Assembly: GCA_025603075.1 (NCBI GenBank) | Contig: MU626308.1 | Location: 1-64,000, forward strand | DNA from: Neoconidiobolus thromboides FSU 785 | Taxonomy: Eukaryota; Fungi; Entomophthoromycota | Direction of reading: 5' to 3' | Length of the DNA stretch: 64,000 nucleotides | Shown: positions 14,448-46,795 of the stretch, one piece after another | Layout: the number at the start of each line of letters is the position of its first letter | Position numbering within the stretch: position 1 is the first letter of the stretch | The notes under the pieces: generated by a model | The model's input: only the letters and a program-made list of their open reading frames with translations | Database searches by the model: none | What the model was told of the DNA's origin: nothing | Position numbers and translations under genes: made by a program

Positions 14448-17251
14448 ATGACTGGTCAATCTAATAAGTAATGAGCTTTATATTTTAATTATGAACTTAT
14501 TAACATTTTTTAGTAATCCCTTTGACTTAAAATCAGATGCTAAAAAAGATTCTGAAAATCAGCCCACTTCTAGAGTAGAGAACAAATCATTATTTGGATT
14601 TAACACTAATCTAACAAACTTAACTAAGCCTTCAGATACCCAAGCTCAATCTACTACACCTATGTTTGGAAGTAAATCTACAACTAATACTTTTGCTTTT
14701 CAGTCACTTAACCCTTCATCATCAAATTTGTCTGAAAAACATACATCCAATTCTACAAATGAAGCTTCAAAAAATACCCAATTTAGCTTTGGGTCCATGT
14801 CAGCAAAAAGTCCATTTGGTGAAAAAAGTAGTTTCTTAAGCGCATCTGGAGACCAATCGAATGCAAGTAAAAGTAATGATATATCAAAAAATAGCTTGTT
14901 TGGTTCTCCATCTAATGCAAATACTTCTACAACAAATATCTTCAGTAACCAGTCAAAGCCTAATCTAACTTTTAGTGCTCAATCTGCTATAACTACATCA
15001 GGTTTATCATCCAAGCAAGAGCCATCTACTCCTTCCAAGGAAGTCTCATTCGGTGACCAATGGGGCTCTAAAGGTTCTGGATCAAATTCATTTTCTAAAC
15101 CACCAAGTAATATGTTTGGAAAGAATGTACTTGAAAATCAAGCTACAAACAATTCAAATGTAAAAAGCATGTTTGGAACACAAAATACCTCTTCAACCAG
15201 CTCACCTGGACTCTTAGGTAATCAAAGTAACTCTATTAATTCATTTCCTTTTGGAAACAATAGTGCTTCTAATACAGGTTTATTCAATACTCAAAATAAA
15301 TCAGAATCAAATGAAACAGAAAAACAACCTAGTAACACATTAAATGTAACCGAAAATCGCTCAACTACTACTACTCCTTCAGCGAATTTATTTAGTAATC
15401 AAGCAACTGGTAGCGCTTCTTCTTCTAATTTGTTCGCAAAGCAGCCAGCTGCTAGCGCTGCTCCTTCTTCTAATTTATTTGGAGGCCAATCAACTACTAG
15501 TACTGCTCCTTCTTCTAATTTATTTGGAGGCCAATCAACTACTAGTACTGCTNNNNNNNNNNNNNNNNNNNNNNNNNNNNNNNNNNNNNNNNNNNNNNNN
15601 NNNNNNNNNNNNNNNNNNNNNNNNNNNNNNNNNNNNNNNNNNNNNNNNNNNNAATCAACTACTAGTACTGCTCCTTCTTCTAGTTTGTTCGAAAAGCAGC
15701 CAGCTACTAGCACTGCTCCTTCTTCTAATTTATTTGGAGGCCAATCAGCAACCACTACTGCTCCCTCTCTAAATTTATTTGGAGCCCAAAACAGCCCTTC
15801 ACAAAGTAAAACCAACAGTCAACCCATGCCCACAACGAGCGCACAAGGGAGCCAGATCAATTCTACAAATGCAGCAGATAATAAAACTTCGAGTTTTCAA
15901 TTTCCTTCAACCACAGCCTCAACAGCTTTATCAGGAAATCAAGCTACAAATAATACAACCGCTACAGATAAACAAACATCGAATTTGTTTGGCTCCCAGA
16001 CAAATAGTCAACCAAAAACCACAAATAATATATTTGGAAGCCAAGCTGCTGCACCTTCTACTCAAGCGCCAACTTCATCACTCAATGCTAGGTAAATTCA
16101 ACTATGATATTATTACTTAATCTAATAAGCTTTAAGCACTTCGGCTGGATCAGTGACGACTCAAGCACCAACGAGTAATTTATTCGGAGAAAAAAGGTAA
16201 TCATATCAATTAACTTGAATATCTTAACGAATATAATAACTAGGTCATCCGCCTCTGAAAATCAATTTTCGGCTCAAGCACCTATATCAACTCAACCCAC
16301 GATAAGGTATTATTAATATTTATTATAAAGTAAGCAACTAATAGTTCAAACAGTACTACAAATGTACTTGGAGAAAAAGTAAGTGAACCCGCTTCTACTT
16401 CAGGAGTACCTGTAAGTAGCTCGACAGTCAATGCACTTGGATCTTCAACAAAGTAACGCTTTAAAATTAGTATAATATTCGATTATTTATTTGTTTGTTT
16501 TAGTATACAAGCTAATGCTTCAAATGATAAAAAAAATGAACATGTAGTTAAAGAGTATGATTTGAATCCAAATCAAACTGTTGGAGAATTTATGGCTGAA
16601 CAACTAAAAAGATTACAACAGCTTCAATCTCATTATAATACAAAAAGCGCAGAGTTATTTGAAATTGATAATAAAGTTAAACTTGATGGTGGAAAGGTAA
16701 TTATATTATTTAAATATATTGCCTAAAATACAAACTATTTTATTTAGATAAACAGAATTTATAAAACACTTGAGCAGTTAGAAAATAGCCAGAACACTAT
16801 TATTAATTATTTAGACTATATGGAAAAGGAACAAAAGGAGATAGAAACTATCCTACTTGAAGGCGAGCGTTCATTCCAAAATGCGTATGCCCTTAGAGAT
16901 AGTTACAAAAAGTCCGAAAGTTCCACTTTGACAAGTGCAGCCGTCATTAAAGATTTAGAAAGAGAAAAACTATATTCCATGGTAGACATTATTAACCATA
17001 GAGCAATTGAAGCAACAAAGGATCTATCAGAGCTTGCTTCTGCTTCAAATGAAATGATGTCTAAGATTTTTGAAGGAATTGTAGGTTTTAATTATTTATA
17101 TAGAATAGAGTATTGATTAATTATTGTTAAATAGGATCCATCGCTTAGACAAAATGTAGATGGATTCAAGTATGAAAGTAAATTGACTAGAAATATTGTA
17201 AGGGAAATGAAAAAAGAAGCTTCAATCATGGGTTTCAAAAATGAGCAATAA
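14448..17251 (+). CDS. NSP1: FG-repeat nucleoporin Nsp1/Nup62-like, multi-exon; contains an assembly gap
   Basis: SLFG/NLFG/MFG repeats followed by a C-terminal coiled coil (QTVGEFMAEQLKRLQ...EREKLYSMVDII); 20-nt first exon, then intron 14468-14513. Confidence 0.75.
15418..15780 (+). repeat. 45-bp coding tandem repeat (APSSNLFGGQSTTST) spanning a 100-N gap at 15553-15652
   Basis: Near-identical units on both sides of the N run. Confidence 0.9.
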
Positions 17252-44801: not shown

Positions 44802-45306
<505 letters not shown>

Positions 45307-45614: not shown

Positions 45615-46795
45615 ATGAAACGGATTCAAATAGTACGAGCAAAAAATACACATATTCAAACGCAATCCGCATTGATTATATCCTTTTAAAGCCTAAACCA
45701 TTATTGATAATTAATATCTTTAACTTTATATACGCTACAAATATTCAACAACCCAAAAGATTTAAAAAGGCAGATGTGACTGAAGTTAACAATTCAAAAT
45801 CTGAAAATGAATGTGAACTTAGTAATTATTTTTTATTTATAATTATAAAAAGACTATCTTAAAAAAAAGTCTTAGAGAAATTGAAGTTACTAGCTAATAC
45901 AAATGATGAGATGAAAATGAAAAATTTTAAAGTTTTATTTTTAAAGTTTTTAAACTACCCTGAATTTAAAGTAGGATAATTTATTATGAACATACATCAA
46001 GTTATATTTTTGTAGAACTATTTAACAGAACTTAAATGGGAATCTATGGATGAAGAAATTGTTTTGGAGGCATGTCAATTATTTTTAGATAAGGCTGAAC
46101 TTTCTAACTTTGAGTATGAAAGTTTAATTACTACAATTCTATTACCAAAAGTAATTTGATTTAAAAATGTACTTGATCTAAACTAAACTTTAAAAGTTTT
46201 TTAAACAAGTGATGTATCCTAGGGATTTAATTCATTGTTTAAATCAGTTCTTTAATCAACGACCACTATGTTCAATTAATGGTATCATTCTTCCTATGAT
46301 CCTTAATAAAAAATTGAGTAATATAATTTCGAGTGTTTGGCTAAATTTCATCTAATTTTCTTTAGATGAACAAACATTTGATATCATAAGTAAAGCAATG
46401 ACACTCGCATATAATGAATCTCATTTTGAAAAGCTTATTGAGTAATATTTTTTATATTTGAAATTTTATATTAACACGAATAAAGAGAGATTACTCATTG
46501 CGGAAGTGATAAGGTTAGGATTACCGATGATATAATATTATCGTTATTTCAATTCATATTAATGAAGCTAAATTATAAATTAAACTCAAAGGCTAGCTTA
46601 GGCTTATTAAACTTAATAGTTGATGAGTCATTGCAAATCAATAAGAATATTAAGCTTTCCAATTTACTTTTATCCATTCTAAAAAATGCCTTATTTAAGC
46701 TAAGTGAGGAGCTTAAAATTAAAGTGGTCAATATTGTTAACAAAAATCAAACTTATCTTAAAAGATCTCTTTTAAAAGAAATTAATAAATATTAA
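45615..46795 (+). CDS. FANCE C-terminal-domain-like protein, 7 exons, 295 aa; first intron is AT-AC
   Basis: Exons 45615-45677, 45734-45821, 45876-45970, 46016-46150, 46197-46317, 46366-46441, 46486-46795 sum to 888 nt without a stop. The C-terminus NKNIKLSNLLLSILK...NKNQTYLKRSLLKEI resembles the FANCE end. Confidence 0.7.

Follow-up and report, generated by a model that had tools for sequence, protein, structure and literature searches.

A probable U12-type AT-AC intron near the start of a gene of unassigned family in Neoconidiobolus thromboides FSU 785

A short segment near the start of gene K502DRAFT_364606 of Neoconidiobolus thromboides FSU 785, a fungus associated with insects (positions 45678-45733), is very probably a U12-type AT-AC intron, placed in phase 0 after codon 21 of a 295-codon gene with seven exons. 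Positions are those of the window, i.e., the whole stretch of 64,000 nt that was analyzed (contig MU626308.1, positions 1 to 64,000). The assembly of the host comprises 24.6 Mb in 799 contigs. The GC content of the window is about 26%, and a run of 100 N at 15553-15652 is possibly an assembly gap.

The signals of a minor intron were read exactly where a first-pass annotation had placed them, i.e., a U12 5' splice site, a branch motif about 10 nt from the intron end and the final TATATAC (Table 1). Nine nucleotides lie between the branch motif and the 3' end of the intron, and the branch adenosine is located 10-11 nt from that end. Without removal of the segment, the first frame reads ATT ATA TCC TTT TAA, and its stop at 45687-45689 is the in-frame TAA that had been claimed for a read-through. 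Removal in phase 0 keeps the frame, and recomputation with an exon-border script yielded the same 888-nt ORF in seven exons that had been announced, i.e., 295 codons followed by a single terminal stop. The segment combines the 5' site, the branch motif with its spacing, AT and AC ends and a preserved frame. We infer that the RNA would be cut exactly at the borders 45678-45733.

Table 1. Positions of the gene models, the intron signals and the minor snRNA candidates (window positions, except for the snRNA candidates, which are given by contig).
Feature	Position	Strand	Remark
Proposed U12-type AT-AC intron	45678-45733	+	56 nt, 20% GC, phase 0
U12 5' splice site ATATCCTTTT	45678-45687	+	agrees with 5' consensus ATATCCTT
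Branch-site motif TCTTTAAC	45717-45724	+	one C to T change vs consensus TCCTTAAC
3' terminal AC	45732-45733	+	segment ends in TATATAC
Exon 1, U12 model	45615-45677	+	ATG and 20 codons (MKRIQIVRAKNTHIQTQSALI), ends in phase 0
Exon 2	45734-45821	+	starts with ATNIQQPKRFKK; common to U12 and U2 models
Exon 3	45876-45970	+	begins at 45870 in the deposited model
Exon 4	46016-46150	+	
Exon 5	46197-46317	+	
Exon 6	46366-46441	+	
Exon 7	46486-46795	+	stop included
Introns 2-6	45822-45875, 45971-46015, 46151-46196, 46318-46365, 46442-46485	+	GT-AG, 44-54 nt
Rival U2-type GT-AG intron	45633-45691	+	59 nt, in frame, GTACGA...TTTTAAAG; used by KAI9295886.1
U11 snRNA candidate	C14:11757-11880	minus	65.4 bits (Rfam cut-off 39)
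U6atac snRNA candidate	C1:41699-41843		33.6 bits (Rfam cut-off 33)
U12 snRNA candidate	C12:151736-151892		34.7 bits (Rfam cut-off 53); below cut-off, full length
U4atac snRNA candidate	C25:43214-43362	minus	40.9 bits (Rfam cut-off 53); below cut-off, full length

The specificity of these signals was determined in the whole genome with a strict pattern, consisting of ATATCCTTT, 20-120 nt of any sequence, the branch motif, a further 6-14 nt and AC; the reversed pattern served as the control. Seven instances were obtained with the branch TCTTTAAC, the segment 45678-45733 among them, and seven with the consensus branch TCCTTAAC, compared to none in the reversed control in either case. The strict pattern thus occurred 14 times in the 24.6-Mb genome, and the variant branch was as frequent among these AT-AC candidates as the consensus. 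The 9-mer ATATCCTTT alone was unspecific (1016 vs. 446 in the reversed control). The exact branch motif matters, since replacing it by the degenerate branch TYYTTAAY gave 54 instances vs. 22 in the control. The roughly 570 copies of ATATCCTTT in excess of the reversed control are a hint of many further AT-AC 5' sites, whose branch motifs would be looser.

The 13 other strict instances were fetched, and each was tested for open frames joined upon removal and for coding log-odds. In nine of them, the joined frames are open for at least 26 codons to either side and the coding log-odds are positive; in a tenth (L039) the upstream frame is short. These ten intron-like instances are 63-78 nt long, have a GC content of 9-22% and show a spacing between branch motif and intron end of 8-16 nt. 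Since about 10 of the 13 behave as introns, the strict class consists mostly of real introns. The other three were not intron-like between open frames, namely L030 (G000:C56:59431-59500), L031 (G000:C72:95580-95677, minus strand; 98 nt) and L040 (G000:C310:15673-15794; 122 nt), the latter two with higher GC. These are probably chance matches, or are located in UTRs or flanked by very short exons. The rough false-positive rate of the strict pattern is accordingly 1-3 in 14. The segment 45678-45733 belongs to the motif family shared by the other 13 and agrees with the intron-like ones in GC content (20%) and branch spacing (9 nt), but no strict candidate is shorter (56 nt vs. 63-78 nt), and it lies in an orphan gene. 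Moreover, it carries AAAG after ATATCCTTTT, whereas a T-run follows in 10 of the 11 other short AT-rich candidates (9-22% GC).

Removal of such an intron implies U11, U12, U4atac and U6atac machinery in this genome, as the first-pass annotation had pointed out, and a check of the whole genome with the Rfam models gave one full-length candidate for each of the four minor snRNAs (Table 1). The U11 candidate has the 5' end AAAAAGGGC and an Sm site, and the U12 candidate contains the box GUAAGGA. The U4atac candidate shows an Sm site and a 5' stem-loop with AAUGAA/UGAG, and the U6atac candidate shows the 5' end GUGUUG, the motif GAGAGA and a terminal U-run. Pairings were derived from an ungapped helix search; RNAduplex applied to whole snRNAs was uninformative. 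Nucleotides 2-14 of U4atac pair with nucleotides 38-50 of U6atac over 13 bp, and nucleotides 57-63 of U4atac (UGCCAAU) pair with nucleotides 24-30 of U6atac (AUUGGCA) over 7 bp. In both helices, each strand deviates from the Rfam consensus, in support of the two candidates as real partner genes.

The candidates also fit the intron itself. Nucleotides 2-8 of the U11 candidate (AAAAGGG) form 7 bp with UCCUUUU of the intron 5' site. The sequence UAAGGAUA of the U12 candidate forms 8 bp, one of them G-U, with UAUCUUUA of the intron (45715-45722), and the next A is unpaired. TA often precedes the motif TCTTTAAC, which lengthens the pairing with GGAUA of the U12 candidate. In the U6atac candidate, GUUGAGAGA replaces the Rfam consensus AAGGAGAGA; the usual AAGGA box is absent, so that AAGG is no longer available to pair with CCUU of the 5' site. 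The AGC triad reads GGC in this candidate, with a matching UGCCAAU in U4atac. Due to these two changes, the pairing between U6atac and the 5' site may differ in this fungus. A six-frame search for PDCD7 (PF16021) was blank in this genome and equally blank in all 14 control genomes.

Minor introns and snRNAs are known from several non-Dikarya fungal lineages and from none in Dikarya (Larue and Roy 2023, PMC10639083). Numbers of minor introns were given for Basidiobolus meristosporus, a member of the Zoopagomycota (n=249), and for Rhizophagus irregularis (n=205) (PMC10639083). The proposal that the minor spliceosome has been retained in some early-diverging fungi is in line with this survey, which documents retention for Zoopagomycota; the host is an early-diverging fungus. 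N. thromboides is not named in the text or supplement of PMC10639083, and Conidiobolus with minor introns found no mention in the searchable literature. The segment 45678-45733 shares with the U12 AT-AC introns of non-Dikarya fungi the AT-AC ends, the rigid 5' site ATATCCTT, a branch resembling TCCTTAAC near the 3' end and, with regard to the host, the phylum Zoopagomycota. It differs in its branch, whose C to T change equals the consensus in frequency in this genome, and in its very short length. In human and animal AT-AC introns, U11 binds the 5' site and U12 binds the branch with a bulged A, at a short distance from the 3' site. Judged by its signals, the segment 45678-45733 would follow the same recognition logic; the difference lies in the U6atac candidate, with GUUGAGAGA and GGC vs. 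AAGGAGAGA and AGC in the consensus.

The deposited protein of the locus (KAI9295886.1, here P0001) is a hypothetical protein of 296 aa, with an identity of 100% over exon 7. Its N-terminus reads MKRIQI/PKPLLIINIFNFIY/ATNIQQ, i.e., 45633-45691 was removed. Thus, the in-frame U2-type intron that had been named as the alternative exists and is the one used in the deposited model, which misses the AT-AC intron in the manner anticipated for predictors restricted to GT-AG. The junction is GCATTGATT/GCTACAAAT in the U12 model and ATTCAAATA/CCTAAACCA in the U2 model. P0001 is probably wrong at the junction of exons 1 and 2, having been built with GT-AG rules. The two models also differ at intron 2, where two in-frame acceptors lie in tandem at a distance of 6 nt, TCTTAG ending at 45875 and AAAAAAAAG ending at 45869. 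The former was used here; the deposited model uses the latter and thereby gains two residues. An acceptor weight matrix slightly favors 45875 (3.5 vs. 2.2 bits). Upstream, a ubiquitin gene with an intron lies on the minus strand (45000-45296). Its ATG is about 320 nt from the ATG at 45615 and the two genes are divergent, so a short bidirectional promoter region is probably common to both. The locus is flanked by this ubiquitin gene and a small neighbor on the minus strand.

For searches and fold analysis, single exons were used or P0001 as a proxy for exons 2-7. No Pfam family was found exon by exon or with P0001, and the FANCE profile FA_FANCE (PF11510) gave no match to the exons or to P0001 at E-values up to 10. 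When 1.84 billion representatives were scanned in full by HMMER with exon 7, only P0001 and two low-complexity matches were returned. Word searches returned nothing for exon 7 and only P0001 itself for P0001, whose 90% cluster has one member; the protein collections held no transcript-derived version. No paralogue of P0001 was found in its own genome, no orthologue in the protein collections searched, no match to a 30-mer of exon 2 in metagenome contigs and no meaningful relative in a PDB sequence search. The nearest ESM Atlas clusters were proteins with the FANCE C-terminal domain (cosine 0.94, 216 shared features; TM 0.70 by query). A single-sequence AlphaFold model was all-helical, with a pLDDT of 54.5 that is too poor to identify the fold. 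With this poor model, Foldseek returned generic armadillo and HEAT repeats, and chain 7kzq_E of the human FA core-ID complex ranked 40th (E 0.058). By these predictions, the product is a helical-repeat protein, and kinship with FANCE may be taken as a lead, not as a result. A Fanconi core-complex subunit in a fungus of zygomycete grade would merit dedicated profile and structural analysis.

The deposited model could nevertheless be right, so that the major spliceosome removes 45633-45691, 45692-45733 is coding (PKPLLIINIFNFIY) and the U12-like signals arose by chance. This reading is unlikely, though it has the structure of KAI9295886.1 on its side, as well as an intact frame, a typical length of 59 nt and a TTGAT branch-like motif about 15 nt upstream of the acceptor AG. 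Its splice sites were compared with 79 U2 introns inferred ab initio from 277 kb (the window and 200 kb of contig 1), a sample selected in part with the very weight matrix used for scoring and therefore biased toward the consensus. In this sample, the donor ATA/GTACGAGC (GTACGA; 3.8 bits) fell on the 6th percentile and the acceptor (3.6 bits) on the 11th. The U2 donor consensus was GTAA[GAT]T; position +4 was A in 65 of the 79 introns, while the C found there in the rival donor is rare (3/79, about 4%). Site strength alone does not decide the matter, because several accepted introns of the gene score similarly; the values of introns 2, 5 and 6 are close to those of the rival. Codon statistics, based on codon and non-coding trinucleotide models built from the window, put the U12 model ahead by about 9 bits. 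The stretch 45633-45677, which is coding under the U12 model only, is exon-like (+5.6 bits, 36% GC), whereas 45692-45733, which is coding under the U2 model only, scored -3.3 bits with 19% GC, like the other introns of the gene. The rival model moreover introduces the hydrophobic sequence LLIINIFNFIY into an otherwise hydrophilic, basic N-terminus, in a protein that elsewhere resembles a soluble one built of helical repeats. As to chance, 1-3 of the 14 strict patterns in the genome do resemble chance matches, but about 1-2 strict patterns per genome would be expected by chance, and none appeared in the controls.

Use of both introns is also conceivable, with minor and major spliceosomes competing to give two in-frame N-terminal isoforms. 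Competition is proposed because the U2 acceptor AG (45690-45691) sits in the region of the U12 5' site; both introns keep the frame and have usable signals. It is considered quite unlikely, and as the segment specific to the U2 model lacks a coding signature, a second isoform, if made, would more likely reflect noise than serve a function. More speculative still, and at best a slim chance, is that this region of about 80 nt acts as a spliceosome switch, giving a FANCE-like protein either a basic, NLS-like N-terminus or a hydrophobic, anchor-like one; if true, minor-spliceosome activity would be coupled to the localization of a DNA-repair factor. Finally, translation might start not at 45615 but within exon 3, at one of its in-frame Met codons, which would place the AT-AC segment in the 5' UTR and leave the protein unaffected. 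Such codons are present there, exons 1 and 2 are without homologues, and the coding signal of exon 1, a short exon, is modest (+3.9 bits). However, the frame is open from 45615 across three exons with matching phases, and the strongest coding signal per codon in the gene is that of exon 2 (0.49 bits). This start is highly improbable.

Under the preferred reading, i.e., a U12-type AT-AC intron at 45678-45733, the 5' end of the U11 snRNA would pair with UCCUUUU of the 5' site, and the U12 snRNA would pair with UAUCUUUA, leaving the branch adenosine bulged at 10-11 nt from the 3' AC. U4atac/U6atac would enter next, the intron would be removed and ...GCATTGATT would be joined to GCTACAAAT... The predicted product would carry a hydrophilic, basic N-terminus, followed by an all-helical repeat protein with a possible relationship to FANCE.

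If RNA confirms the intron, one more minor intron would be added in a fungus of the Entomophthoromycotina, and the deposited N-terminus would be corrected, with 14 wrong residues replaced by 15 others. The known distribution of the minor spliceosome would be unchanged, as it is already documented in Zoopagomycota. The case would also illustrate a systematic error, by which GT-AG-only prediction swaps AT-AC introns for nearby in-frame GT-AG pairs. Thus, surveys of annotated introns would undercount minor introns in such genomes.
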